A stretch of 63,088 nucleotides of DNA, filler included, from Parasitella parasitica NRRL 2501 (taxonomy: Eukaryota > Fungi > Mucoromycota): assembly GCA_025201805.1 (NCBI GenBank). It is 5 parts of 5 records of this genome, joined end to end, with 100 filler letters (N's around TTAATTAATTAA, not from the genome) between each part and the next. Parts side by side here need not be neighbours in the genome. Positions count along the whole stretch, not along the records: positions 26,125 to 43,697 come from MU619341.1; 4 more parts are not named here. One strand, 5' to 3'. Positions 10,970 to 43,697 of the stretch are shown here, piece by piece. Each line of letters opens with the position of its first letter. Position 1 is the first letter of the stretch. Below the pieces are notes generated by a model. The model had not been told where the DNA came from, did no database searches, and saw only the letters and a list, made by a program, of their open reading frames with translations. The translations under genes were made by a program, and so were the position numbers.

Positions 10970-11578
10970 AACAGGCTTCGAACGTCATACACTCATTTAT
11001 GTTAACACCCAATTTATAATTTCAGGGATCGTAAAAATAAATACAAGTTTGCCCCTTTATGAGGTCAATATAAAACAAGATTATTAGTAGATTTTGTTAA
11101 AGATAAAACAAAAGGAGGAAGATCCTTCTTGGCCTGTTTCAGTATGCACTAGAGCTTAATTTTTAGTATTAAACAACAAAGACGAAATCAAATGAATAGA
11201 AGCAAAACGAGTAGCTGAAGCTTGCTCTACTTTTTCTTTATTTTGTTTTATTTCGGTTTATTCATTAAATATATTCGCGTATTAATTTATATTACATACC
11301 ATTGTTTATTAAATTTCGTCCCTTGCTTTCCTTCAAATAGATTTTATCCCAAAGTTTCACAAGAATCAAAAGTGATCGACCAGCTAACTTCAAAAACTAA
11401 ATTGTTAAATGACCACATACTGCCATATTTGGTCTAGGTGCAAAATACCCAAAATGTTCCAAATTTTCTATGATATTTAGCATGTCATTTTTGCTTCTTT
11501 TCTTCTTCTCATCCTTTTTTTTTGTACATTTTACCCTCTCTCTAGTATAAATCATATATATATTACATCATAAAAAGT

Positions 11579-14389
11579 ATGGTGGCTCAATCAAATGAGA
11601 AATGTAAAAGACTGAAATCCATTTTGCATGGATTAATCACAGGGCTATTATTAGCAATTTTATTTTTTTCCATAGCAAGATATTTAACAGGTACATACAT
11701 GATCAACATTTATTCAATGCCACATTAACAAAATGGCTAAAAATTTTGATTTATAAATAGAATCACAAGATAATGATCGCTGTCATAGTATGCTGAATGA
11801 AGGGTCGTGGATGACAGACGAGTATAACCAGTGGCAACCATCTGGATGCATGTCTCGCACATATACCAAAAATGAAATAGGTGAATGTTTGAACCAGAAA
11901 AGAATTATATACGTTGGTGACTCCATCATGAGAGAACAATACTATGCTATGACCCACTTTTTAAAGAAGCCATCGTCAAAACCTCAAGATGCGCTCCACC
12001 GAGATCAATCATTCTACTCTGCAGAGCACAACATCACAGTCGAAATGTGGTGGGATCCTTATCTCAACACCACAAAAACGATTGATTTGCTCAAGGGTAG
12101 CACTCAAGAACAAAAGCCAAGCTTATTGATCATGGGCTCCGGTGTGTGGTACATGAGAAGAACAGCAAATGAGTACCTTCGTCTTTGGAAAACTGCAGTC
12201 GACAGAATTTTCGATGCCGCTTTGAATTATCATGTTGCTGATAAAATTATGCTTTCCCCAGTGGAAATTGTCGAGTATCCTTTACTGATACCTGAGCGAA
12301 AAGCTACTTTGAAGCTGGACAAGATCACCATAATGAACAATTACCTCAGGGAAAGAAGTACACTCCTCCGTCATTCTGTAACACCCTTAGTCGTACCATT
12401 TGTATGGAATGAAATTGTAACCTCATCAAAAAACCAGACAAAGGACGGACTTCACTTTATGGAACCAGTAACCAAGGCACAAGCTCAACTGGCACTGAAC
12501 TATCACTGTAACGAAAATGTCAAAGTACCACCTTTTCCCATAGATACAACATGTTGCTTCCGCTATCCAGCCCCTGCTTGGTATCAAAGCTCCATTTTTG
12601 TCTTTTTCTTGTGCTTTGTGCCCCTCGGATTCTCTGTATTCTTCGCTTCTAATAGCTATGGTGGTATGTATTAATTATAATTAGTGTTACTCGTTAATAT
12701 TGTATTTTGAGCGGAATCTAACTAATAACTGTTATAAAATATGTAGGACGTGTAATGGACGCCATACGCTGGTTCTTCCCTGCTGCTGTAGAAACATTGA
12801 CAGCACTGTTTATTTTTGGCATATCTGTCATTTATATGTATCTGGGCGATCGCACTCAACTGTTTGGGAAAATATTCAAGCAATATGATTCTAGTACATT
12901 TGCAATATTGATCTCATTGATGATATTCCTTGGCGCTGTTACACTAGACTCAAATCACAATACGAATAGTGAGAAAAATAACGACGCCGGCTTTCTAAAT
13001 AGACATCAGACCGATGAATGGAAGGGCTGGATGCAACTCATCATTCTGATTTATCATTTTGTTGGTGCCTCTCGCATCGCTGCTATTTACAACCCTGTCA
13101 GAGTCTTGGTCGCCGCTTACTTGTTCCAGACTGGTTATGGTCACTTCTTCTTCTTTTACAAGAAGGCTGATTTTGGCATTGCTCGTATTCTCAATGTCAT
13201 GGTTCGGCTGAATCTGCTTACTTGTGTGCTGGCTTATCTAATGAAGACAGACTATCTATTTTACTACTTCTCACCATTGGTCAGTTTTTGGTTCAGTGTC
13301 ATTTGGATTACTATGCGCATTATGCCAAGCTACAACTCGAAGCTTTGGTTCCTTGTGTCTAAAATCGCTGTGATGGGCGTTTTGACCGGGTTCATCATTC
13401 ATTACCCTGGTGTGTTGGAATCTGCTTTCAACTGTCTCGATTTCTTGTTCCATATTCGATGGAATGTTACTGAATGGCGCTTTAGACTCTCACTTGATGC
13501 TTGGATCGTCTATATTGGTATGCTCTGTGCCCTTGCCACTATCAAGATTTCTGAATACAAGATTAGTTCAAATCACCAGCGACTTTGGTTACTGACTAGG
13601 TTGGCAACTTTGGTTTTTGCCCTATTTGGGATGATTGGTTTTTTCGTGTTTGAATCAATTCAATCAAAAACATCATATACTTTATATCATCCTTACATAT
13701 CATGGGTTCCTGTCCTTTCTTTTGTCATCTTGCGCAATTATACTCATCGCGCACGCAACACTTACTCTCGTTTCTTTGCATTCATTGGAAAGATTTCCTT
13801 GGAGACCTTCATTGGCCAGTTCCACATGTGGCTAGCTGCTGATACTCGCGGTCTGCTGGTTATCCTGCCCAACAGTAGTTGGGTAATCAAGACTCAACTG
13901 GGCTGGTGGATAAATCTTTTGGTTTCCAGTATTATTTTTTTCTTCGTTTGTTATCATCTAAGTGAAGCAACTGGTACTCTTACTAAATGGATTTGCTCCG
14001 GCGCCCAAGAGCAACAAAAGAATAAGGCTTCTGTTATCAATACTACCTTGAGTAGCAAGATAGCCACAGTGAAATCAGCCGCTGACATATCTGATTCAGT
14101 ACCGTTACTACCTACCAACCACAAGACATCTTCCGATGGAGAATCTTCCACGTCCACAGTGTATATAGATGAAGATGTACAAAAAGGACCTGCCCAGCTT
14201 CAAGTTGAACGAGCAAGTGAAGAGTCTTCTATCAATATCGATCAAGTATGGGATGAATCTTCATACGGAGCCCAATCAAAATCATCCTGGTGCAAATCAC
14301 TTTATTTGTCTAGCACCAACAATTATTTTATCAGATCCCTCATTTGCTTGATCGCGATGGGTGTTCTTAATCGATTCTGCGTTGCTTAA
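11579..14389 (+). CDS. Cas1p/CASD1-family O-acetyltransferase (SGNH-like N-terminal domain plus multi-TM Cas1_AcylT domain)
   Basis: YVGDSIMR and DGLHF (GDS/DxxH), GFLNRHQTDEWKGWMQ, VRVLVAAYLFQTGYGH, GKISLETFIGQFHMWLAAD. Introns at ~11691-11760 and ~12665-12747. This is the fungal capsule-acetylation Cas1p family, not CRISPR Cas1. Confidence 0.92.
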
Positions 14390-26123: not shown

Positions 26124-26270
26124 NTTTGGGGTTCATGCTCTGCTCCTTAATTGAAATAAGTGCTTCACTGCAATAAAGAGCTGTATTCGCAGTGGTAAAT
26201 TCAAGCTCAGAAATATGTTTCCATTGCAACTTGCGCATATCCCTAATTTTCATTGCTTGATATCTCAAAA
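26124..26270. repeat. inverted near-perfect copy of ~27515-27663
   Basis: TTTGGGGTTCATGCTCTGCTCC... is the reverse complement of ...GGAGCAGAGCATGAACCCCAAA. Confidence 0.8.
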
Positions 26271-29200
26271 AGTAAGTCTTTAATGTTGCATTTGTTTGCT
26301 AAATTGATGTATATTTCAAATATTTCAATACAATAATAAAAAGAGACTTGTAATAATTCGCAGCTTTCAATTGTATCCGAACAATAAAAGAAGTATCTCG
26401 TTTATTATGATATAATTACAGGGTATTTATATCTTCAATTATTTACTACTACAACTGAAATGGTAACTGTAATAACCAATAGATTAATGTGATAGTATGT
26501 TGTCACTGTTGATGAACGAATAGAAAATACGCCGCCGTGTTAGCATTTTGTCAATTGGTTTGATATGTTTCATTGTTAAAATTGGTCCAAGAATATGAAC
26601 TGATGTAACATATCAAATAGTTTGTTCGCGCCTTGACATTTGAGCAAGTCCGCATATCTTGTTGATGTCATGGCAGCCGAGACATCGCGATAACTAGTGA
26701 CAGTTGAGATATTATACTGATTCGTATCTGATACAATCATATAATATATTTGCAGTAAATCAGTAAGCTTAGTACTTGTAGGAATTGATATCGAGAAGAT
26801 GTAGCAGTGCGTATACATCATAAATGCTTTCCTCAGCCTTTAAATTCTGCATCAAACCATATTAATTAGTTATGCTTTAAAATTATCTTTTCATATTCCA
26901 GGTCTTTCTCTTTCAATTTATGATGTTTTTGTTTCCCAACGAAAACAACTTATATTCTTCTGAGAGTAGATACAAACGCATGCAGTCGACCAAACAATCC
27001 ATCACATCAATATATATCATATTTGATCTGCCACAATTAGAGACAGGAGATCATTGGCAATGTACTTCAATTGAAGATTGTCTAATGATGTGATCTGATA
27101 CCCTTGTGTAAATTGGAGAATAAAGTCTCTGCTTCAAATCAAGAAGGTTATTCCGAGCACCAGAATAAAGGTTAAGGCACTGTCAAATCAAATACGTGTA
27201 GCCCTTGCTGTATAACCTCATATCGTACCCTGTCAAGTAGTAGATTGTCACTGTGAATTAGTCTTGTTGTCAAAAATTAGTAATCTAAATAAGTCACTAT
27301 AAATTTATGTAGCTGTAAAAAGTATAAATAGCAGATGCAATTTTGATCTTAAATAAAGTATCTTTAAGTTTCTGTATCTCGTTAACATTTGGTTTTTATT
27401 GTCTTTTTTGATCCAACAATTACGTTAAAATAACACATTTGCACAACATTTCGCTGTGCGCATTATATTGGGTAAAACGGAGATAATTTTAAAGAGAACA
27501 CATTCCAATACTATTTTTTGAGATATATTAGGCAATGAAAATTAGGGATATGCGCAAGTTGCAATGGGAACATATTTCTGAGCTTGAATTTACCACTGCG
27601 AATACAGCTCTTTATTGCAGTGAAGCACTTATTTCAATTAAGGAGCAGAGCATGAACCCCAAAAACAATCTGGTTATGTCTTTACATGAATCGATACCCA
27701 AGATGCTGTAAAATATGAATATAAAAGCTATTTTTATGTAGCTTTATGTTTAGGTTAAAATAAATGCCACCTAATCATGACCATCACCTTTTTCACCGCT
27801 TAAAGGCATAATCTACAATCTCTGATATCTTTACAAACTAGTAAGTGATAAAGACACAATATTCAGCCAACATCTTATTTTTTTGCGTCCTTCTACAGCA
27901 TATCCGAGTTTCATGCATCACTGACCATTTTTCAGATTTTGCTATGTTTGGACCCCAAACCTCAGATTCGATTTTCAATTTTCAACTTTGAGTCAACCTT
28001 CAGGGTCATTTTTAGGTACGGATTTGAGGTCCAACTAAGAACAAAGGCTAATACTAGTATGACAACTGTATCCCACTACGTCTTCCTATTCTCGATATCT
28101 ATCTTTGTTGTCGAGATATTACCACAACTAGATTTTTCAGATTTTGCGGATTTTACAGTATATGTTCCTATTACAAGTACCTTATTTTGCAACTAAACCA
28201 AGTTTACGTTCCTAAGTAAAGTAATAAAGCACATTTTGGTACACTAACTGGTGTTAAATATGTTGTACAAAAGCTCGAATTCGACAATCTAGAGCCAATT
28301 TTGTCTTTTTACGTTAAACTTTGTCCCCCTATTTCTCTACAAACCACTATGACAACTTGGCCTGAGTAATTACTAAAATATTTTCAAAACTTAGTTTTCT
28401 GCTAGTTGTATTAGTGTTAGATAGATATGTCAAAAAAAATTTTTTTTCAGATGTTTTTAGCAGAGGCTTCATTTATTTTCACAGTTTTCACAGCAATAAA
28501 TGGTATTTAAAGATACATGATATACCAATACTAAAATGGAGCTACAAAATAGCTACCAAAAAATTTTAGTTTGGTCAGAAAATACCAATTTTTGAGCGAG
28601 AAAATCTCGAGAAACGACATTAATTTTTACCCTTTTGAATGGCTTCATTTTGGCCCTCTAAACATAGGACCGGAAAATGGTGGATTCAGTTTGGTCGAGA
28701 CAAGATTTCGATTTCTGGCAGATATAATAAAGCTACAGTTGTAAACAAAGTATTGATTTGTAGGCATTGACATGATGGTTTGTTTGGTCAACTTTATAGA
28801 GTTGAATGTGCTCAAAATATGCTTGATTTTACTCAAAAACTATCAAAAATGGCGTTTTTTGAATATTTGAAAATTGGTAATAAAAAAAGGTGTTTCCATA
28901 GCCTTGTAATATATATGGTTGGGTGCAGAATTTAATTTTTGTCATAAAACACTTAGTTCGCATATCCGATATGCCTATTGCGTTTATGAGATATTTAGCA
29001 ATGAACGATGCAAAAAAAATCTCGAAACTGGTTTGAGTCAAATGGAAACACAGTGCTGAGATTCAACCTACAGTCTTTTTTTTTTTTTTTTTTTTTTNNN
29101 NNNNNNNNNNNNNNNNNNNNNNNNNNNNNNNNNNNNNNNNNNNNNNNNNNNNNNNNNNNNNNNNNNNNNNNNNNNNNNNNNNNNNNNNNNNNNNNNNNNN

Positions 29201-30339
29201 NNNNNNNNNNNNNNNNNNNNNNNNNNNNNNNNNNNNNNNNNNNNNNNNNNNNNNNNNNNNNNNNNNNNNNNNNNNNNNNNNNNNNNNNNNNNNNNNNNNN
29301 NNNNNNNNNNNNNNNNNNNNNNNNNNNNNNNNNNNNNNNNNNNNNNNNNNNNNNNNNNNNNNNNNNNNNNNNNNNNNNNNNNNNNNNNNNNNNNNNNNNN
29401 NNNNNNNNNNNNNNNNNNNNNNNNNNNNNNNNNNNNNNNNNNNNNNNNNNNNNNNNNNNNNNNNNNNNNNNNNNNNNNNNNNNNNNNNNNNNNNNNNNNN
29501 NNNNNNNNNNNNNNNNNNNNNNNNNNNNNNNNNNNNNNNNNNNNNNNNNNNNNNNNNNNNNNNNNNNNNNNNNNNNNNNNNNTGCTTTACTAATTCAATA
29601 TGATGTGTGAAAGACTGCCAGTAATTCACATCACCACGCTTAAACGCTTAATCTGCAATTACTGCTATACTTACAAACTATTATACGATGAAAATACAAC
29701 TTTCAGCCGAAAGAATTTTCATTTGAACTATTCTATAACAGCATAATATCCAATTCTCAAATATTTCTGATCATTTTTCAGATTTTGCTAGGAGTGTTAT
29801 GTCAAAATAAGTCAGTAAAATGAATCTGCCAAAGAGCTACACTTTTATTAAAAATACATCGTCCTCTGAATGTATTTATATAAACTAACATTATGTGCTA
29901 ACGTCATCATACACAGCTGTAATAACCAACATTTATATATAGAGCATGCGGTGTAAATTCCTGATTTACCACGTACATTGGCTTTTAGCCCCTTGATCTT
30001 GCTACAAGGTCTATGGCATGTTATTGACATAACAATGAGTTTGGACGCCACACCTCATATTAGATTTTCAATTTGCAAATTTGCGGTAACTTTCAGGACC
30101 ATTTTAAGTTATGCATTTAGGGTCCAAGGAAAGTATCTACCTTGTTCTAGCACTTGTACAATATAACTGTATCTCGACTGCGCTTTCCGAATTCCAATAT
30201 CTATCTTAGTTGTCGAGATAACGCCAAAACAAGATTTTGCTGAATTTATAGCAAGTTATATGGATAAAGATTGATCAAATCTTACGTCTATAAAAGTCTC
30301 CAGTTGTGTATTTGGAGTTTTACTGTGAGAAAGTCTTTA

Positions 30340-31240
30340 TTACGTTAAAATAGCACATTTGCACAAAATTTCGGTGTGCGCTTTATATTGTTGGGTAAAA
30401 CAGAGATAATTTTAAAGAGAACACAATATTCCAAATTATACGGGAAAAGATGCTCTCTTAAAATAGAATATATACATAATTTCAACGATTGCTTTGTCAA
30501 ACTCACATTTAAGAGCAACATGATTTGTGTCAATAGGGACAGAAAGCGTTTGGTATGCAGTAGTTTACGCAACCTAAAAAAAAGCCTTCTTCTTGTGATT
30601 ACAGATATATTTTGTTGTTTTTGCTTTATTCGACACGTTCATTGAACGAAACAAATATTCAGTTTGTAGAGTGTAAAGACACTGCTAAGAATCAAGAGAG
30701 TACTGTACATTACCTATTAGCTTTAGAAGTATGTCATTCACAATCTTTATTCATACATTAAAGTATAAAAAATCGGACAATTTGGCCTAAATCAAAATTT
30801 AGGTTTTTCTGTTTAATCCAGTTAATTTTCAGTAATGTTGTGCCAGAAAGGCATAAGATTAAGCAAATATTAGATTGGTAATTCTTTGTATACAATGACA
30901 AGGAATAAGCTATTAATGTACAATATATAGAACATGTAATAAACTTGGTATTACATACCAAGTTCAATGTTTAACCATGATGACAAATAGTGTTACAATA
31001 GATATAATCTAGTATTAAAAGATGGCATATTCTTATCAATAAAGTCATTAGTTTTTGTGTCTGATTTTATTTTTATAAAGTTATACATTTTTTGAGCAGA
31101 TCATGTTTATATATCCCCTGCGCATAGCAAATAATACAATTTAATTTAATCTTTGCATATTAAGATAGAGCACCAGTTCTTGTATCATCAGTTTGTTTTA
31201 TTATGCATGGAGACTTTTTCATGAATTTGGCATCAAATAT
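30340..31240. repeat. non-coding dispersed repeat family; partial copies at ~27420-27510, ~33465-33752 (inverted) and ~62340-62935
   Basis: Shared blocks such as TTGGGTAAAACAGAGATAATTTTAAAGAGAACACA, ATTACCTATTAGCTTT and TTTTTCTGTTTAATCCA. Boundaries approximate. Confidence 0.7.
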
Positions 31241-32673
31241 ATGCAATGAAAAAAATTACAAAATATTTTTTTTTGACAAACTGAACGATTTAGAACAAAA
31301 AATGCGCTTGCTTTTTTAAATTCAGCTGAGCGCTCAATCAAAGGCTTTGGAGGCATAACTGATAACTATAACATGATATATCAGTATGGAATTATCTCTT
31401 TTCCAGAAATCAGTAGTAAAAGATAGTTCAGAATCTCTATATTCTGAATACAACACCAAAAAAAAGCACAAAATACGTTATAACCGTGTAATATCTTCAA
31501 AATAATACTGATGTATGTCGCAAATTTCTCAATTTCGCATATTTGTTTTAAGCAGTGTAGAGATACGAGAAACAACCCATATGTCAATTATAATACACCA
31601 TTCAAATGCTACAATGCATTCAAACTCGGCTGTCATAAGTAAAAGTCTAGATCAGAAATATGAGACTTGATATAACTGTTTTTCCCCTTTTTTCCTCTTT
31701 TCATCAAGACTTTAGATTGAAATAACTTTTCATCCAAACAACCAATTTTCAAAACATAAAAGATATTCTATTCAACAACATCAANNNNNNNNNNNNNNNN
31801 NNNNNNNNNNNNNNNNNNNNNNNNNNNNNNNNNNNNNNNNNNNNNNNNNNNNNNNNNNNNNNNNNNNNNNNNNNNNNNNNNNNNNNNNNNNNNNNNNNNN
31901 NNNNNNNNNNNNNNNNNNNNNNNNNNNNNNNNNNNNNNNNNNNNNNNNNNNNNNNNNNNNNNNNNNNNNNNNNNNNNNNNNNNNNNNNNNNNNNNNNNNN
32001 NNNNNNNNNNNNNNNNNNNNNNNNNNNNNNNNNNNNNNNNNNNNNNNNNNNNNNNNNNNNNNNNNNNNNNNNNNNNNNNNNNNNNNNNNNNNNNNNNNNN
32101 NNNNNNNNNNNNNNNNNNNNNNNNNNNNNNNNNNNNNNNNNNNNNNNNNNNNNNNNNNNNNNNNNNNNNNNNNNNNNNNNNNNNNNNNNNNNNNNNNNNN
32201 NNNNNNNNNNNNNNNNNNNNNNNNNNNNNNNNNNNNNNNNNNNNNNNNNNNNNNNNNNNNNNNNNNNNNNNNNNNNNNNNNNNNNNNNNNNNNNNNNNNN
32301 NNNNNNNNNNNNNNNNNNNNNNNNNNNNNNNNNNNNNNNNNNNNNNNNNNNNNNNNNNNNNNNNNNNNNNNNNNNNNNNNNNNNNNNNNNNNNNNNNNNN
32401 NNNNNNNNNNNNNNNNNNNNNNNNNNNNNNNNNNNNNNNNNNNNNNNNNNNNNNNNNNNNNNNNNNNNNNNNNNNNNNNNNNNNAAGCTCCGCCCTACAT
32501 CAAAACAGGGGGAAACCCTGTTTTTTTGTTTTTAGGATTTAGGTGTTTACTTAGCCAAATTAATCGTGATTTTATGAGAAAAACAAAAACAAAAATAAAA
32601 AAAATAAAAAATAAACAGAATTAAAAAATACATAATCATCTTCCCACTTTATTTGAACATAAGCATTGAGCAT

Positions 32674-33465
32674 TGATGTGTCAATTTCCCAACCGGAAGT
32701 CAAACTCAAGTAAACTCAATCCTGAACACAATGCAGGAACATATCCCAATGAGTCATGTTCCTTATTTCTAACTCAACATGACATGTTCACGGACAATAG
32801 ATACAATCTATCGTTCCATGTCTCACACTTGTATCTTATCCTTCCATCACTCCACTTAGATTCACTAGTATATAAACCATCATTTTTTTCTTGTAATAAA
32901 CGAGATCTTTGCTTGATTAATTCACAACTGTTTTATTTAAATAATTTCTCATTCTGATAAATCATTTTTTAATCTGTATCTACCTATCTCGCTTATTACA
33001 AATACAAAACTATCGCAATATGGCTCCTAATAACCAACTCGACAAGAACAAGACTGCAACCTGACTCCAAGGCTCATTTGGATAATTCCTCTTCTCCGGT
33101 ATCCCAAGTTGGTCAACATGGCAAGTCTTCCTCTGTTCCTCAATCTCGACCCAATCAAATGGAGGTCGATGACCCCATGGATGTTGCTCAAGAGAGCTCA
33201 TCGTCTAAGGCAATTGCTTATGATAATAATCGTGGCAATGCCGGTTCTGCAACTGATGCTATTCAAGAGAATCCATCGAGCAGTAGTGATGTACCTGTAC
33301 AGAGTGCAGCTCTGGCAAATGCATCTGTTGTTGTTGACAGTATGAAAACTTTTCCAGCTGCTTCCACTGTACCTAGAGGTAACTATATAAAAAACCCATG
33401 TGTGGTTAATAGTAGTATACTCGCTAAATCAATTGAAACAATAGACTTTGCATCGTCTGTGTTAT
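32674..33465 (+). mobile_element. 5' LTR (32674-32963) followed by a truncated, decayed gag-like ORF
   Basis: TGAT...ATCA LTR with TATATAAA and AATAAA, second copy at 15613-16379. Followed by ATG at 33019 and an S/A-rich ORF cut by another repeat. Confidence 0.65.
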
Positions 33466-33959
33466 GCGCAGAGGATATATAAATATGATCTGCTCAAAAA
33501 ATGTATAGCTTTATAAAAATAAAATCAGACACAAAAACTAATGACTTTATTGATAAGAATATGCCATCTTTTTATACTAGATTATATCTATTGTAACACT
33601 ATTTGTCATCATGGTTAAACATTGAACTTGGTATGTAATACCAAGTTTATTACATGTTCTACTGTACATTAATAGCTTATTCCTTGTCATTGTATACAAA
33701 GAATTACCAATCTAATAATTGCTTAATCTCATGCCTTTCTGGCACAACATTGCCCCGCCAGATTGAGCTATTATTTGATTCTTCTATTCCTCAAGAGTTA
33801 AACTCGAAGAATAAGACTAACAAATTTTACCATATGTTAAATATATGTTATGCAATAGAGCATTGTAAAGCAAATTTTAGTCAGTAAAAACCTTGAGAAC
33901 CTTTTACAATAGGAAAAAAAATAGGGAAAAAGACTTGGTTATTGCTTTACGTTAGCCTT

Positions 33960-35147
33960 TTACGACCTTTTAACTTGTTTTCCACCACTCTTTTGTTTAC
34001 GTCGAGTAGCAGATTGTCTCATATTAACTGTTTTAGGAGTTAATCGTCGTTTACCGACAGCTTGAGCACCATCTCTTCGACCCCAATACAATTCAATGTG
34101 TTTGGTTGAGTCAAAGTTTTCAACAGGTTCCCAAGTATCCTCGTTAGGATCATCAAACCCCTTCCAATGCACTCGATATACATAATTGCCGGGAGTTCCT
34201 TTGTGATCAATGACAGCCTGTATCTCGAAATGTTCTTTGGAGAAATCATCGACCGACGTTGGTTCAGGATTTGCAGCAGCTTTGTATATAATGTGATGAG
34301 TAGATATATCTCTACTAAGTAGAGCATCTGTCTTATCCACAAGCACATAAGAACCTTTATCAGTTATATTATGGATTAGATATGGACCCTCATACCGTTC
34401 ATCGAACTTATTTTGCGATGCACATTCTTGATCATAACCTTGCTACCTATTAGGTAGGGAGTATTGACCATTTTATGTTTCTTTGCAAAATAAGCATGAT
34501 CAGCATTTTGAGTCTCTACTATACGTTTAGAAATAGCCGGTATATGAACATCTTGTACAAACTGATAGCGTTCGTTTATGATCTTATTATCAGCTTTCTC
34601 CGAACTTGCAGTAGGTTTTATCTTTGAATAGTCTGCGAGACCATTAGGTTGTCGATTGAACAAAAGCGTATAAGGACGAGATTTGTGCAAATATATAGTT
34701 AACCCATGGTATATAGTGTTCCCATTGATCACGTTTACCCTTAAGCAATTTGATTGTAGTTAGTTTGGTCAGCTTAATGAATGATTCACTAGTACTGTTG
34801 CCAAGAGGATTGTTACTAAGTGACAGACGCTTATCAATGCCACTGACTTCCATCATAGCACTAACAACTTCGTTAACCCATTCAGCACCTCGATCAGAAG
34901 TAAGCTGCTTAGGCCAACCAAATAAGCTGAAAATCTGTAACATCTCTCTAGCAATTGTAGTCGCATGTTTATCCGGGATACATCTGATCACAGTAAACCT
35001 TGTAAAATAATCAGTGAAGACAAACAGAAAGTTATTTCCAAAAGAACTAGTAACACCCATATCACCTAGATCCATACACCAGTGATCCAACGGTTGGTCG
35101 GCTTTAGTACTGCGAAAAGGATGATATCCCTCTCTTGCAATATTGTA
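33960..35147 (-). mobile_element. Ty3/gypsy chromovirus pol, 3' part (integrase core plus chromodomain), frameshifted
   Basis: HWCMDLG, FVFTDYFTRF, TSDRGAEW, GPY motif, YRVHWKGFDDPNEDTWEPVENF. Continues at 42265 across the Tc1 insertion. Confidence 0.93.
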
Positions 35148-35319
35148 CACTATTTTCACAAATTATTGGCGCACATTTGGAAAATAAAATGGCACACATT
35201 TGAGAAAAAACTTGGCGCACTAGTTGAAAAAAGCTTGGCGCATCGAAAAAACAAAATTTGGCGCATAAAAAAGTTTAATATTGTCGTATTTGAGGGCTTC
35301 TTTACTTTTACATTAATTT

Positions 35320-36641
35320 TGAATTTGAATGATTTTGTACATGAAGACGGCCAGGGAAACCTTTTTAACGACAAAGGCATGGCTGTTGCAGTCGTGGAAA
35401 TGGAAGTAGATGAAGAGATGTATCCCATTGAAACGGTGACAAATTTTGGGATGTACCAGGAGCTCAAACCACCTGAAAAGCCCGAGAAAAACAATGAAAA
35501 GAAAGAAGACAGAGGAGATGTCAAGCTAGAGAACAACACGACAACCCGTATCTACAAAAGTTACAAGGAAGTAGAGAAGGAGCAACTGTTTGCTTTGGTC
35601 TATGAAAAAGGCATGAGTGCTAGAGAAGCAGCCCTGAAACTTCATATCACTCCACGCACAGCACAAAGATGGATAGCGAACAATCAGCGAGATCCTCAAA
35701 CGTATACCGCAAGAAAAGAGGGTAGTGGAAGACCAGTCGGTAGACCAGCAATTATGGATGATCGTCATAAAACACATTTGGTCGACTTAATCGACGAAGA
35801 GCCTGCATTAGTGTTGGATCAGATGATGGATAGCCTGACAGCCGAGTTCATTGACCTCGAGATATCAAAAACAGCACTGTACAATTTCGTTACCAAAGAA
35901 TGCAAGATCAGTCTGAAGAGAGCTCACTTCCATTCGGTTGAACGCAACTGCTTGTAAAAGATCACAGCAAGAAAGGAATGGGTAGAAAAATGGATGGCCA
36001 CCGACATGGACTACATGAGCAACTGCGTATTCGTCGACGAAACAGCATTTCATATCAACATGAAGCGATTTATCGCATGGTCAAAAGTGGGAACTCGCGC
36101 CGTTGTCAAAATACCGAAGACTAGGGCAAAAACAACAACAATCTTGGGTGCAACCTGTGCTTTTGGTGTTGTCAACATTAAAGTAAGACGTCCTCGAGTA
36201 ATGCCCACTTCCAAGAAAAGAAAAACCGCTGGATCGAGTGGACAAACTCAAACACAGAGCAAAGGCACTGTTACAGGTCATTACTTTAACTTTATAAGCG
36301 ACACCATGGACGAAATGGACAAGCACCCAGAGATTTTCAAGGACAACTACTTGATTATGGATAATGCTCCAATCCACACAAATGATGATATCAAGATTCT
36401 TATTGAAAGTCGTGGCTACAGATGCGTCTATCTTCCTCCTTACTCGCCAGAGCTTAACCCTATTGAGCAATTCTAGTCTATTTGTAAGAGTAAGCTCAAA
36501 CGAGAGAAGCTGCTGAAGGAAGAGACACTCACATCTAGAATCGGAGATGCATGCAATCAAGTGCTTGTTAGTGATCTTAAAGGATTTTGTAAATACTCCT
36601 GTGATAGATTCGATGATTGCTTGAAAGAAATGCCTATCTAG
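35320..36641 (+). pseudogene. Tc1/IS630 DD34E transposase with two in-frame stops (35955-57, 36474-76)
   Basis: HTH region (SAREAALKLHITPRTAQRW, GRP) and catalytic FVDE...MDNAPIH-34aa-PPYSPELNPIE. ORFs 35082-35957 and 35994-36476 share a frame, which continues to TAG at 36641. Start not resolved. Confidence 0.93.
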
Positions 36642-36652
36642 AAATAAAGATT

Positions 36653-36745
36653 ATTTGTCGCATGTGTCGCATTCAATTTTTGTGCCAAGTTTTAATCCAT
36701 TTATGCGCCAATTTTTTTTCCAAATGTGTGCCAGTGAAAATAGTG
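36653..36745 (+). repeat. internal, partly deleted right end of the Tc1 element
   Basis: Direct copy of 42096-42264 lacking ~76 bp. Ends GTGAAAATAGTG followed by TA (36746-47). Confidence 0.88.
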
Positions 36746-36829
36746 TATTTTCCTTGTTATGGAGGGCCTCTGTATTTCTCGGGTTGATTCGGACTAGCAA
36801 ACATCTCATACTCCTTTTCAACACCATAG

Positions 36830-37080
36830 ATCTCTTTGCCTCCTCGTGGTAAGATCTACTCCATCAACGAAGGTAACTACAGATACTTTGACGAGCCCAG
36901 CAAGAAATATGTCGATCAAGTCAAGCAAAAATACAGCGCTCGTTATGTTGGTTCAATGGTATCCGATATCCACCGAACATTGTTTGTATGGTAAGTTACA
37001 CACACGCGCATCAAAAACATGCGAAAACACAAGCTAACTCCCCCTTCATGTGTGTAGGCGGCGGTATCTTTGGTTACCCT
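36830..37080 (+). pseudogene. FBP1: captured fragment of class I fructose-1,6-bisphosphatase (one exon, one intron, start of the next exon)
   Basis: 36830-36990 reads ISLPPRGKIYSINEGNYRYFDEPSKKYVDQVKQKYSARYVGSMVSDIHRTL. Intron GTAAGT...GCTAAC...TAG at 36991-37057, then GGIFGYP. Not listed in this frame in the ORF track. Confidence 0.9.
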
Positions 37081-37620
37081 ACTGGAGTGATGTCTGACTA
37101 AAGACCATCACGAAAGAGAAGGTAAATGTTAAAAGCAGGATGTCTGCATGGCCATCCAAATGAAATAAATATTTTTGATCAACTTGCTTTAGAAGATGAT
37201 AATGCTCACAATTCATGCTAATGTGCTGTCTGGTAGAAATCTAGCTACTCTTCCCAGATGGATTTGTACAGATTTGAAAAGTGATGTAGTAGCAAAAGAG
37301 AAAGAAAGAGTCAGCTCCAAATCATTTCGCAACCTCATCATCAAAGCAATAAAAAACAAAGCGATCCCTCCTATACCAAATTCCCCTGATGGGCGCCAGA
37401 GTCATGGCATTATGAACCGCTGCGTCTCAGCTACACCCACCTGATTTATGGTTGGAACTTCCTGGATCACAGCAGAGTCAACACTTCTTCCTTGCAGACA
37501 AAGAGGTGGCCTCAGCGATCATAATGTAATCTTGCTGCTCGTATAAAATGCTTAAAAGTGCGTTGGCGCTTCTCACGTACTCTGGAAGATTCATTGTAGA
37601 CAGTCTGAGGCTTTTCAAAA

Positions 37621-37740
37621 CGAGCTACAACGATTTAAAGCGAGCTTTAACGATCTATCACGATCTACAACGATTTAAAACGATTTAAAACGATCTACCA
37701 CGAGCTACAACGAGCTACAACGATTTAAAACGAGCTACAA
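37621..37740. repeat. 10-bp minisatellite, 12 units (CGAGCTACAA / CGATTTAAAA / CGATCTACAA variants)
   Basis: Exact 10-bp register, every unit beginning CGA. Confidence 0.92.
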
Positions 37741-37879
37741 TTCAAATACTTGTCAATTGTAGCTCATTAACTAGCAGCTATGCTATGCTATGAAGTGTCT
37801 GTATTGCTACAGATTGGCGTCGCTATCAAATGATGATCTGCAATTAACATAATATATCTAAATTTGAGAGAAGAGAGAA

Positions 37880-39135
37880 TTACTCAATGTCCGTCGGCAG
37901 CTTGTTCTTGAGCGAGTTTGCTGGAAGCACTGTAATCAGTCCTTGCTCTTCATTTTCCATAATCTCGTACACTAGCTTTTGCTTCTGTAACTCCATTTCC
38001 AAATAGCACAGGTTCTCGAAAATTTTGGGCCATCGATTTCTTTCGCCATAAATGGTAGGCACCTGAGCAGATCGGATTTCTTTGTATTCATACTTGCCGT
38101 CGACTAGGAAGCAAACTTCAGACAGAATGACGGTGGAATTGACGCTCTGGATTCCACAGACTTTGGTATTGATAAAGCTTTGCACGTCAGAATTGAGGTG
38201 GTGGCTTGCGATTCGCTTCATCATGCTGATTAACGTGCTAATCTGCTTGGTAGCGTCGTCAATAACCTTGTCACTAGATGCATTTGATAATCCAAATGAT
38301 CCCTCCAATGCCACTCTTTCGATTCCCCAATGATCGTAGCTCATTCCGTCGACAAGCTTATCCTCGTCAATTGATAGCGTTGGGATTTCACACCAATTCA
38401 TTTGTAAGAGACCCGTCTGATTTGAAAAAGTTTCAAAGATAGGCACAATATAACGTACCCAAAACGTTCGTTCGTAATCCCTTTTGCTGGTCGAGGAAGG
38501 CGGTACAGCAGACGTGCTTGTGTCTACAAAACGAGTAAACATGAACTTGGCGGCGCGAATCAATTTAAGATCATGTGGTGCTGGGTTGTTGGTGCTGTAA
38601 CTCCAAATGAACAGAGGCAAAATATCAATATATTCTCTATGATGGCGTCTTGTATAAATATTGCCAGAAATGGATACTGACGTAAGGTGCTCAGATTCGT
38701 AAGTAGAGCTTCACGTTGGCCGATTGCCACCAGATCATTCAGTTCAGTGGCGCGTTCTGCTGGGATCTCTGCTCTGCTTGGGCCAATTTTGCTGGAGAAC
38801 ACCTGTACACTGTTGATGTTGCTGCGCTTGTTGAGGATGATAGTGGTGGCATCTGTTTGCTTTGTGTGCTTGGCGACATGTGTCCTGAATTCTTCAGTGT
38901 CTCCAAAGTGACTCAAGCATGATGGGCACGCGAATCTCTCTGGGATCTGGCTGTTTGTTGACTTTACAAAGACTAAGTCCTTTGTATCTCTATGGCGCTG
39001 TCCTCGTTTCATGGCTGGTACTTCAATCTCGTGCTCAGTCAGCAGATGCAATCGTAGATTGCGACCCTCAGACTTTACTTCATTGCATTGGTAACAAGCG
39101 TAAATGAGCCTGACAACTTGTGGAGTAGCCGACAT
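37880..39135 (-). pseudogene. two C2H2 zinc fingers plus probable PD-(D/E)XK restriction-endonuclease-fold domain (Mucorales expanded, Crinkler-like family); one frameshift near 38620
   Basis: CYQC..LRLHLLTEH and CPSC..FRTHVAKH, then ERTFW..VPIF, WCE, LVDG, ERVALEGS, KVIDDATK. The nuclease fold is inferred from motif order. Confidence 0.65.
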
Positions 39136-40850
39136 CTGAGTACAATCTACGATATGCCGAAAGTATCTGTAAGAATATGTGAAAGGAGGGAAATAAGTTT
39201 TAATTTTTTAAAAAATGGAAATTCCCTACATACCGTACCGTCACTACAAATTGAAACGCGAACGGTTGAATGCCAGTAAATGCTTGCAAGCATGATCCCG
39301 ATGCAAAAAGCACTTGGTGACAGGCACGTATACAATGTTTCGAGCATATTGGTACCGTTCAACTTGTATGATAAGCAACACTTGTCAAGGAATCAGTCAG
39401 GCAGAACCAGTCGCAATTATAGATAGTTAATTTGCTTGGCAGAAATGTGAATTTAAAGCAATTTTGCCATAAAATCGATACAAACAGTGATTATATGGAT
39501 ATCGGTGTATTTTTAATGCTCGGCTGTATTGTTATTATGACTTGAAACCACTTGAAGACGAAACCCAATATTTAGCGTTGTGCAGGAAATAATTTTGGAT
39601 GGTGCAAATAGCATACCCTTTTTTTTTAACACAAGGCCGTGTAAAAGATTGTCTTGTGACAATTCAATACGCATTATGGCTTGATGCTTTTGTCAATGGT
39701 GTTCTTTGGAAAGCGATATATAATATACACGAATGAAAGCGTATCAGCCTTCTGGTCTACGTACTATTGCCTTATGTGAAATTTGCCAATTTGCATCCCT
39801 ATTTCGATCTGTTTGCCACACTTCTAAGTTGGGTTTGATAATAAATGACAGGCATTTTGCTGTCTGCCCTTATTTGAAGCATTTACAGAAACTAATTGTC
39901 AACCAATGCCATGTCGTTCAATTGCCCAAAATACTTAAACCGCTCCATGTTTACATCATAATAGCTTCCAACGATTCACTAGTAGATGAGCAAGTCGAGC
40001 GATATTATTTTAAATTATGACGAGAAGCCTTCAATTTTATTGTGATTTACTATTTGAAAATGCAATCATGTTCACCATTAGTTTCTCACAAAAATAGTGG
40101 TAAGGGTGATATTTTGCATCGTGCACAATCGAGATCTCTTCAATTATATTTGCACCTTTTGCATTCCAGAAATAACGCTTACAGAATCTTCTTAACACTA
40201 CCAAATGTGGGAGACCTGTTGGCTTTGATGCGCGACATGAGGAGAACAAATGTGAACAATGATCTAAGTGGCCTACTCAAAAGAGGTCAATAACGCAATG
40301 AAATAATGAATAAAGAAGGGTACTTCCTAGAAAGAACGAAATATTTCTTGAAGGATAATTTTCTTTGTTTCCTTACAGGCAGTGATCCACCAAACTTTAC
40401 GCTTTATAAAAAAGCAACCGCCAGTTAGTAACATCAACTGAGAGATGCTTAGGTGGAATCACATTACAAACCAGGTTGGCGTCAAAGAACTATAGCTCAA
40501 ACGTCAATGCTATGAGATTAAAGACATGCGGTACTAATGAGCAGTACGATAACCGACCAATGTCAACTGGAATGGCTTTATATCAAGTAAGAGAAAAGAG
40601 AGCATGGAGGTAACCACGAAGCCTTTTGCGTTTGCAACCATTCAGTAAGAACCGCAGGAGCGAGGAAGGAATCATTAGCCATGACATTAGAGTTGTTATA
40701 TTTTGCAGACCACGGAAACAAACTGAAAAGAAAAGTTCGGTTTCTCTGATCTGCTATAAATTCGAAAATTGGTCAGAAGCGAATGATTTTGACAAATATA
40801 GTTTGATCCTTAAAAATCAGTGAATGTACAACCACAAATGTCCTGTGGTA

Positions 40851-40910
40851 TCCAGACATATCTAGATGTATCCAGATATATTTAGGTGTAACCAGATGTA
40901 ACCAGATGTA
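40851..40910. repeat. 10-bp minisatellite, 6 units (consensus TCCAGATGTA)
   Basis: tccagacata tctagatgta tccagatata tttaggtgta accagatgta accagatgta. Confidence 0.85.
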
Positions 40911-40932
40911 TCGCTCATCCATTGCTGGGTTG

Positions 40933-41727
40933 TTCAAGATTGATATGCGCTTTCTGTATGACACTGATTAGCACGAGTATGATATTGGCGCTGGCGAGGC
41001 TGCCAAGGCTTACCAAGAAGCCAAGTTGGTGGATGACCTGAGCAAATTGATTAGAGAATTAAAGGATGTGCTAGATGGATTGATGAATATTGTCTTGGAT
41101 GATCACACGGCCAACAAGCTCGAGTCATGGTTTCTGCAAATTTGTGGTCTTTCGGCGGAAATTGGATCAACACACCTGGCATTTGATGGTCTTTATGTGG
41201 TAGTGCCACAAGCAAAGCTGCGCTTCCCCTCTAGCATTGCAACCATGGGTTCATTTGTGGATTTCTTGGACGTGCTGCTGCTGCTTACAGTAAGTCTTTG
41301 ATTTGGCTGCTTCGGTCTTGATAAGAAACGCGTATCTAAATCTTTATTTTAGGCAAAGCTTGAAAAGTGTGCCATGAATATCACGTCTGCTGTGGAAGAG
41401 CTGGAGAACAGACAAAGTTCAATGGGTATTGCTTTTAGTCGCAATCGCTCCCTTTTGTAGGGTAAGAGACGTGATGCTTGGATGCGCCCAACGTATTATT
41501 CCCCTCCTCGTTATGTGGCTGCTGATGCCAAATTGCCTGTCAACTTGTTTGGTCTCGACAAAGATGATAGTGATGCGCATTCCAAGGAAGATGTGGAGGA
41601 TGACCAAGTCTTAGATGCAAGTGATACGAACGCTGATCAGTTTGGAAGGGTCTATCAAGATGGCGCGTGGAGAAACGTCTTCGTCAAGGAATCAGGTGTG
41701 GACACCCATCGCCCAGATGAAGAGTGA
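40933..41727 (+). pseudogene. 3' fragment of a second probable restriction-endonuclease-fold gene, with an intron
   Basis: FKIDMRF...EYDIGAGEAAK...KLVDDLSKLIRELKD, QICGL, DGLYV. Intron 41290-41352. In-frame stops at 40969 and 41458. Confidence 0.6.
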
Positions 41728-42264
41728 CAACATCATACCGCTCTTCACTGCCTTTTTCTTTTTTCTTTCTTTCCCTCTCTTTATCACTGTCAACAACACT
41801 ATGGAGAGGTTCGGTGATTCGCTTGTAACAACATATCTTGAAACAATTGCAACACAATTGGTGCATGGAAACATACGCCAAAGTCAAAAACAACAACAGA
41901 CAGATTATATATCCCCACCCTTTATTTCTTTATTTTCTTTATATTACTTATTTCCCACCGAGCTTAAATCGATTGATAGTATAAGTTAAAAAATCTATTG
42001 CCTTTATATATCTTTGAATTCGCTCAGAAATAAAACTTCAAGAAGATTCTAGCATAATAACATTTCCTATTTTTGTTCTTCAGGTCTAATTATCAATTTG
42101 TCGCATGTGTCGCATTCAATTTTTGTGCCAAATTTTAATCCATTTATGCGCCAATTTTTTTCCAGTTAGCACGCCAATTTTTTTTCCAAATGTGTGCCAT
42201 TGTATTTTTCAAATGTGCGCCAATCATTTTTCCAAATTTGCGCCAATAATTTGTGAAAATAGTG

Positions 42265-43621
42265 TACTTGTTACATTCAATAATACAATTAGCTAATATC
42301 CTTTCAATATCTTTTTTTTGAAGATTTGTCCAATGAAAACCATTTTTATGAATGGCAAGCTCTACATGTTTTTTCCCAAAGTGACCAACCAAGTGTTGAG
42401 AAATAATCATGTTATCTCTTTCATTAGCAGGTGGAGTCATATAGTCAGCAAACTTAAGTGTACGCATTATAAGTTCCTTTTGCTTTTGCGAGGCAGCTGA
42501 GGTGATACCATCTTTCATTGAAGTGGCTTTGACAGCCTTAGCATTTTCTGCATTGCGGAAAGAACCAGAACGTGACACCTTCGTAATTTTGACGGGTAAG
42601 CGTTTCATCTTAATAGTAGGGGTTTTCCCTTTTAAAGAGATTATCTTCTTTCGCTTTAACTTTTCAGCACCATCAGCATAGTACCTGCCCCCCAGAAGAT
42701 GGCGCGCTGAAGCATCAGCATCAGAATCTTCGTAGAGTCGAGACAAAGCATCAGGAATAACATTGAGGACGCCTGGAAGATGTACTATATCAAACGTGTA
42801 CGAAAAAATAGTTTCCCACCATCCAAGCATTAAAGCATTGGGTACCTCCTGTGTATTGAGATAAATCAGACTTTTATGATCAGTATGTAAGGTAAATTCG
42901 CGCATATACAACAGTCGATGAAATTTAACTAATGCATAGCAAATTGCCAAAAGCTCTCTTTTCGTAGTGCTGTAATTGCGTTCAGACACAGACAACTTAC
43001 GGGAAATGAGGCCCACATACCGAATTTCGTCATCGACAATCTGATACAAAACAGCCCCAATGGCCGTTAGACTAGCATCAGTAGCCAAGTGAAATCGAAC
43101 CGAAAAATCAGGAGGTGACAGCACGAGTGCCATGGTAAGTGCATCCTTCAGGTTGGTCACAGCTTTTTCATGAGACTCATTCCATACAGATGCTAAATCA
43201 GCGTAATGCTTCAAAGAATCGAGATCCTGAGTCAAACGAGAATAGCATGGAATGGCAGCACGGAAGTACGACATTAAACCCAAGAAAGATGCCAACTGAC
43301 GACCAGTTTTGATAGCCGGCCATTGTGCAATGTTAGTCAGCTTACGACCATCCGGCAATAATTTGCCTTGAATGACGCTCCAGCCTAACAAGTAAATACT
43401 ACGTTGTGCAAACACTACTTTTGCAGGATTAAGCATCAAATTAGCGTTTGTGAGACGACGTATCACCTCAGACACCAATTCAAAATGGTCTTGTAACGAA
43501 CCATTGCTGCTCAAAATTATTTCGTCCACATAGCATATAGCAGAATATTGGCAATCCGTAGGAAACGATGATGGAGCTGAAGATGTTGTTGTATTCAAAT
43601 CCGAGAGCAATGTTTGTAATG
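42265..43621 (-). mobile_element. Ty3/gypsy pol, middle part (RT C-terminus, RNase H, integrase zinc finger)
   Basis: YVDE (degenerate YVDD), FLGLMSYFR, LATDAS, ERNYSTTKRELLAI, LHTDHKSL, NVIPDALSR, HLVGHFG. Same element as 33960-35147. Confidence 0.93.
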
Positions 43622-43697
43622 TGTTGTATCCATAGAATACCATGGTTACCACTATTTCAACTCAGTTGTCATGGCAACCGTTCCTAATCGGATCTAA
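43622..43697. mobile_element. start of an LTR inserted into the gypsy RT; runs into a gap
   Basis: TGTTGTATCCATAG start. Matches window bases 1-68 with one mismatch. Confidence 0.7.

Follow-up and report, generated by a model that had tools for sequence, protein, structure and literature searches.

A probable Tc1 macrotransposon carrying passenger genes within a gypsy retrotransposon of Parasitella parasitica NRRL 2501

We propose a model in which a 7,117-bp insertion from the genome of Parasitella parasitica NRRL 2501 (assembly GCA_025201805.1) is a Tc1 macrotransposon, a composite moved by the outer ends of two linked elements, and we consider this the probable explanation of our observations. 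The insertion lies in the MU619341.1 part of the 63,088-nt stretch of DNA that was analysed (hereafter the window, along the whole of which positions are counted), where it interrupts the integrase of a retrotransposon. As expected of a macrotransposon, the ends of two Tc1 elements stand in direct orientation around DNA that belongs to neither of them, and a single outer duplication frames the whole within a contiguous target. Loci in other genomes, retrieved via proteins of the passenger DNA and labelled L001-L012, allow the history of this package to be followed beyond the window.

Integration into a gypsy integrase

The outer ends at 35148 and 42264 were integrated as one unit, since there is one TA duplication, the target is contiguous and in frame, and gypsy copies with an empty site are present in the reads. 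The two copies of the duplication are found in the sequence at 35146-35147 and 42265-42266, and directly within them lies the 26-nt terminal inverted repeat (TIR) CACTATTTTCACAAATTATTGGCGCA, at 35148-35173 on the plus strand and 42239-42264 on the minus strand, identical at 26/26 positions and with 2 matches in the whole window against 0 expected from 100 shuffles. The flanking DNA is Ty3/gypsy pol in minus-strand orientation: domain search and alignment place the reverse transcriptase (RVT_1), RNase H and integrase zinc finger of the upstream half at 42267-43652, and domain search places the downstream half at 33960-35145, with the integrase core (rve) at 34644-35147 and a chromodomain at 33960-34346. 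When 35148-42266 is removed the minus-strand frame is restored, reading from ...ILANCIIECNK straight into YNIAREGYHPF..., and the rejoined protein aligns with a Parasitella gypsy integrase free of gaps across the junction and through the C-x2-C zinc finger. Furthermore, a read unitig with a loose end at 42258, found in two runs, continues from left-flank sequence directly into the right flank, which implies that other gypsy copies are uninterrupted at the same TA. Finally, no N run occurs within 35146-42266, those of the MU619341.1 part being at 29098-29582 and 31785-32484. The original prediction for this locus, made from the sequence alone, had described the outer TA duplications, the perfect TIRs, the two halves of one gypsy integrase and the entry of the left end and the distal right end as one unit, and had denied an assembly gap inside the element; all of this is borne out, and the rejoined flanks also agree with other gypsy copies, both in the integrase alignment and in the empty site of the reads.

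Ends, transposase and passenger DNA

Tc1-A (35148-36745, plus strand, delimited by its tips) is a complete Tc1-family element of 1,598 bp with its own left end and a shortened right end, as follows from a third Tc1 tip, GTGAAAATAGTG, which stands with its TA at 36734-36747. The size of ~1.6 kb that had been given to the transposase-bearing part was thus correct, and the third tip had been overlooked, so that this part is an element with a right end of its own. Both types of Tc1 end are built of a 23-bp repeat containing TTGGCGCA. The left terminal region (35148-35270, plus strand) holds the 26-bp perfect TIR followed by about 3-5 copies of this repeat, the inner right end (36653-36745, plus strand) has kept just a 12-nt tip and 2-3 units, and the outer solo right end (42096-42264, plus strand), which is of the full type and 169 bp long, has about 4.6 units and the 26-bp TIR. 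Counted in whole units, the left end and the outer right end come to about five apiece. The inner right end is ~72-76 nt shorter than the outer one, with units adjoining the tip among those lost. The outer end starts abruptly in the 3′ untranslated region (UTR), just past the position of the transposase stop, and it is a 5′-truncated, fractured second Tc1 copy. TA adjoins all three tips of the window as well as tips in Mucor velutinosus and Mucor circinelloides, the terminal repeats are inverted as in other Tc1/mariner elements and are accompanied by the subterminal 23-bp repeats at both ends, and the inner element falls within the 1.3-2.5 kb of this superfamily, which the integrated unit of 7,117 bp does not.

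The transposase gene (35379-36641, plus strand; Pfam and translation) encodes helix-turn-helix (HTH) and DDE_3 domains, with Pfam matches to DDE_3 (E=2.6e-21) and HTH_23/HTH_32, and the DD34E spacing typical of Tc1 was counted on the translation from MDNAPIH to NPIE. Two in-frame stops, TAA at 35955-57 and TAG at 36474-76, interrupt it in the window copy and occur in neither of the other copies. Orthologues of Tc1-A in M. velutinosus and M. circinelloides are 96-98% identical and match up to the tip, and the stops and frameshifts of the three copies are all private to each copy, so the transposase was intact when the copies of the three species diverged.

The passenger stretch, 5.3 kb of non-Tc1 DNA between Tc1-A and the outer right end, begins at junction J1, the TA at 36746-36747 between the inner right tip and an intron of a fructose-1,6-bisphosphatase (FBPase) gene. 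The 3′ remnant of this gene (36748-37084, plus strand) consists of the intron tail, an exon at 36830-36990, an intron and the first 27 nt of the last exon; exons were queried individually, and the FBPase exon matches FBPases in PDB at E=5e-14. The rest of the last exon has been removed from the window copy by a 336-nt deletion between CTACTG repeats. This piece is the sole gene fragment in the passenger DNA. The C2H2 zinc-finger gene (37883-39135, minus strand) is full length in two frames, with an intron or frameshift near 38629-38659, and the homologue of a 249-aa hypothetical protein (P0162; 40906-41724, plus strand) is likewise full length; homologues of the C2H2 protein are confined to Mucor and Parasitella, and P0162 belongs to a large family found in Mucoromycota only. 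A further protein, P0163, reads from a hypothetical gene of the 249-aa type into a Tc1 right end. Upstream of the C2H2 gene lies a 10-bp minisatellite (AAAACGATCT-like, 37617-37758), which is expanded in Parasitella (L001:11916-12346) and within which the sequences of M. bainieri and two other contigs cease to match the window. A short dispersed repeat fragment (41997-42095), recognised by read depth, stands between the passenger DNA and the outer right end; its depth is about 10x and the flanks of its other copies are unlike one another. A search of the region for tRNA genes gave none, and the fragment is therefore not an evident tRNA-derived element. Neither Pfam searches with the smaller passenger open reading frames (ORFs) nor an exact look-up of ten window ORFs in the protein collection gave a match, and metagenome scans with the Tc1 end motifs gave none apart from one chance match.

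Short reads were compared as unitigs over 36400-42399. One 5,367-nt unitig, identical in two runs from different studies, spans 36659-42025 and bridges J1, and its depth is 108; the unique unitig 42172-42311, which runs from the outer right end across its junction into the gypsy, has a depth of 132. Both junctions are thus real and the passenger DNA is single-copy. Tc1 parts have 3-4x single-copy depth, and among them a multi-copy unitig at 42102-42169 matches the outer type of right end, identifying this type as the usual right-end form of the family.

The package is present at different loci in other species, with two partial copies in M. velutinosus and one in M. circinelloides, none of them complete with both ends. 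J1 is identical in the window, in M. velutinosus (L002) and in M. circinelloides PS15p (L010). Contig 38 of M. velutinosus (L002/L003) carries Tc1-A, J1 and the last two FBPase exons, intact to the stop codon, and continues with the C2H2 gene and downstream DNA, collinear to window position 40159. At the left tip of L002 there is TA followed by unrelated DNA that is not gypsy, and a search for the upstream FBPase exons within 7 kb to the left of Tc1-A in M. velutinosus, as a simple insertion into the intron would place them, found none. The second partial copy, on contig 21 (L009), runs from the FBPase 3′ UTR to 38597 and then over 40157-41144, where a 14-nt microhomology deletion joins passenger DNA to the outer right end, of which the last 40 nt remain, with TA and a flank with a PIN-domain host gene beyond them; passenger DNA and right end were therefore joined before, or independently of, the insertion into the gypsy. 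In L010 an intact left tip with TA adjoins yet another flank, the passenger region is rearranged and the outer right end is absent, and the left flanks of L002 and L010 differ both from the gypsy and from each other. Parasitella L001 is collinear with window 37078-40564 and keeps only the last ~24 FBPase codons, and in M. bainieri passenger pieces are split over two contigs. The original prediction had allowed that part of the cargo might have been inserted after the jump. We reject a series of later insertions, as the order from the FBPase 3′ end through the C2H2 gene to the downstream DNA is collinear in M. velutinosus and Parasitella, which makes the passenger DNA one block, and no nested element with a duplication of its own was found within the passenger DNA of the window.

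Further features were noted at these loci. The public annotation of M. velutinosus merges the Tc1 transposase (DDE_3) with the C-terminal FBPase exons into a 379-aa gene model (L002:12028-13558). A 1.7-kb non-autonomous element with inverted ends beginning CACTACGGCCGAA (L009:7560-9255, L002:7983-8887) is inserted with a TTT duplication at the equivalent of window 40157-40159, the L002 copy breaking off after 905 nt, where other DNA takes over. A second Tc1-type element with the TIR CTGTAGGGGGAAAAACTGTCC, TA on both sides and the domains HTH_Tnp_Tc3_2 and DDE_3 occupies L009:4254-5907; its flanks are not contiguous in the paralogous L002/L003, so it too lies at a rearrangement junction. In L010, inverted repeats of ~460 nt (11117-11584 and 12503-12961) flank the counterpart of window 37561-38631, which runs in the opposite direction to that in the window, M. 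velutinosus and Parasitella; recombination between these repeats has probably inverted it.

Origin and spread of the composite

The following sequence of events most reasonably fits these observations. Tc1-A would have landed in the FBPase intron, and an earlier move would have carried off the 3′ part of the FBPase gene, as is suggested by the precise coincidence of the remnant's edge with the Tc1-A tip in three species. The inner right end may have been weakened through the loss of 23-bp units near its tip, presumed to be transposase-binding sites, and it is plausible that this favoured use of the distal end. Transposase, which we infer was supplied by Tc1-A itself since the reading frame was intact when the copies of the three species diverged, would have paired the Tc1-A left end with the full-type right end of a fractured neighbour 5.3 kb away. 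A cut at the two outer tips would have released 7,117 bp, passenger genes included, to be pasted into a TA of the gypsy integrase, and the package appears to have spread between species recently.

Several observations weigh against this model. The left junction at 35147/35148 falls outside the stretch covered by the read comparison, and the junction at 42095/42096 lies inside repeated sequence (41997-42101, about 10x) where no listed short-read contig joins 42025 to 42102, so that it rests on the assembly. The window alone has a copy that is complete, with a duplication and both outer ends; those in M. velutinosus and M. circinelloides are truncated or rearranged, and neither a donor site nor a second full copy nor an excision footprint was found in the window and the retrieved loci. 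Finally, no Tc1 end accompanies the passenger block in Parasitella L001 and M. bainieri, so that it may have other ways of moving as well. An assembly chimera, in which two loci were joined through the repeat at 41997-42101 and the passenger DNA and outer right end are not contiguous, would account for unitigs that end at 42025 and resume at 42102 at a depth of about 10x; we give it hardly any credence, as it would leave unexplained why a Tc1 tip stands at one and the same TA in both halves of a single gypsy integrase, an independent link of passenger DNA to the outer right end is present in M. velutinosus, and unitigs from the runs of two studies span J1 and the outer right junction at single-copy depth.

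Filling in situ would explain the TA duplication equally well. A simple Tc1 element in the gypsy would later have suffered a break near its 3′ UTR, to be repaired by copying Tc1-A from another locus, with synthesis running through the short right end into 5.3 kb of flank and rejoining at 42096 with filler DNA. In its favour, the 95-nt fragment of dispersed repeat at 41997-42095 looks like DNA filled in where a break was repaired, and the start of the outer right end within the 3′ UTR is abrupt. Such a history is nevertheless very improbable given that in M. velutinosus the same right end adjoins passenger DNA away from any gypsy, that the passenger DNA is single-copy although copying would leave a template, and that the left element agrees over its full length, as far as the tip, with its Tc1-A orthologues. 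Unlikely, although less so, is that the passenger block is part of an unrecognised mobile element spreading in the Mucoraceae, beside which Tc1-A happened to land, so that the Tc1 ends explain only the last hop into the gypsy. The block is indeed found at 88-97% identity in Parasitella, M. bainieri and a second assembly labelled M. circinelloides, in each case at unrelated loci and without Tc1-A, synonymous divergence (Ks) is very low in all pairs, and one passenger ORF comes from the large Mucoromycota-only family. Yet no terminal repeats, duplication or transposase were found for the block, and an FBPase remnant that is cut at the Tc1-A tip in three species and shorter where Tc1-A is absent fits decay of a composite better. 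The mode of entry into the gypsy is unchanged by this explanation.

Under the macrotransposon model the spread of the package can be gauged from its divergence. Package identity is 94-98% among the window, both Mucor species and Parasitella, non-coding stretches included, whereas a comparison of M. velutinosus with M. circinelloides PS15p gives DNA identities of 80.8% and 87.5% for host genes adjoining the loci and 83% protein identity for the PIN-domain protein, which shares 71% with its Parasitella counterpart. Intergenic DNA of the two Mucor species barely aligns; for the right flank in M. velutinosus, an empty-site comparison in M. circinelloides (L012) met intergenic DNA too diverged to align. 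In the C2H2 exon Ks is 0.01-0.12, and the ratio of non-synonymous to synonymous divergence (Ka/Ks) is mostly 0.3-1.6 and up to 2.7, on small counts. As similarity in the package far exceeds that in host genes, and as the flanks differ in every genome, these comparisons point to recent transposition together with horizontal spread or introgression of the package. For the same two reasons, vertical descent of a native FBPase/C2H2 neighbourhood was rejected as the sole explanation. At Parasitella parasitica L001:8444-13049 the passenger block has 89-97% DNA identity to the Mucor copies, against 71% for the host protein, and this block is a candidate for gene transfer between mycoparasite and Mucor. 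A more far-reaching proposal, which we hold as a tentative possibility, is that acquisition of a second right end turned an autonomous Tc1 element into a 7-kb gene-carrying vehicle, which passed horizontally between Mucor species and on to the fusion mycoparasite Parasitella parasitica.

Other repeats were noted in the same part of the window. Just beyond the chromodomain end of the gypsy, an element at 30834-33751 has inverted ends of ~300 nt (97-98% complementary) around the N run at 31785-32484, and Pfam searches with its ORFs gave no match. A 147-nt inverted repeat pair (96%), 1.2 kb apart, lies at 26125-27663; its left arm begins at the edge of the part, so the element may be cut off. Two diverged direct repeat copies (76-97%) at 27419-28145 and 29746-30425 stand on either side of the N run at 29098-29582.

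Relation to known systems

Tc1/mariner elements are usually regarded as minimal and transposase-only. Our model describes a natural fungal case in which a Tc1 element would have moved 5.3 kb with two whole genes, and the composite offers a concrete substrate for how weakening one end may redirect Tc1 transposase to a distal one. If the model is true, elements of the cut-and-paste type can carry genes about within mucoralean genomes and from one such genome to another, in a group to which agents of mucormycosis and their mycoparasites belong. Cargo-carrying transposons with signs of horizontal transfer are known among fungi as the Starships of the Pezizomycotina, which use a tyrosine recombinase and span tens to hundreds of kb in ascomycetes; nothing comparable to their machinery is present in the Tc1 composite, and the 7-kb vehicle, if it exists, would be their DDE-transposon counterpart in early-diverging fungi. 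Aberrant transposition of the Tc1-mariner element impala in Fusarium oxysporum was reportedly described by Hua-Van et al. in 2002 (cited in PMC8225341). Impala resembles the present case as a fungal Tc1/mariner element with non-standard transposition products, and pairing of the ends of linked elements is also cited for it in PMC8225341.

In maize, the Ac/fAc system is an established example of such pairing between linked elements (Huang and Dooner 2008, as cited in PMC8225341): the 5′ end of a full element is brought together with the 3′ end of a fractured one that lies close by in the same orientation, and everything between them moves, much as we propose here. Ac/fAc is a hAT system of a plant with an 8-bp duplication and genetic proof, whereas the present composite is a Tc1 system of a mucoralean fungus with a TA duplication, shared by several species and deduced from sequence. 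Bacterial composite transposons of IS630 (PMC9977792), including Tn630 (PMC11544213), belong to the same superfamily, and in them too two element copies bound passenger DNA and move as a unit; they are prokaryotic and usually have two whole insertion sequence copies, whereas here the second copy is a 169-bp end.

The original prediction had called the locus a Pack-like Tc1 element, and had regarded gene-fragment capture as best known from Pack-MULE, CACTA and Helitron elements of plants. Capture by Tc1/mariner ends has already been described in plants as Pack-Mariner, which in rice is proposed to arise by mobilisation of neighbouring insertions (PMC8903248). Pack-Mariner and other Pack-TYPE elements of rice and maize share with our composite Tc1/mariner-type ends and TA duplications around host gene fragments (PMC8903248), and a host gene fragment between the ends is present here in the FBPase exon. 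Pack-TYPE elements have no transposase gene; here one is present, with two stops private to the window copy, and the composite is not Pack-like in the strict sense because this gene is carried and was intact when the copies of the three species diverged. A full element together with a fractured right end makes it a macrotransposon instead, and gene-fragment capture describes the FBPase piece and not the other two passenger genes, which are full length. Pack elements are moreover non-autonomous and small and mostly carry fragments alone, whereas this unit has a transposase gene, two full-length genes and a length of 7.1 kb, at one copy per genome. Among the DNA transposons of Mucoromycota, the Tc1/mariner superfamily is the most frequent (PMC5751038); it has been curated in Mucor (PMC9963178), and no cargo-carrying copy is reported in these two accounts. 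Composite end-pairing and Pack-Mariner are thus known; what would be new here is a composite that is fungal, was autonomous when it spread, carries whole genes and is common to several species.

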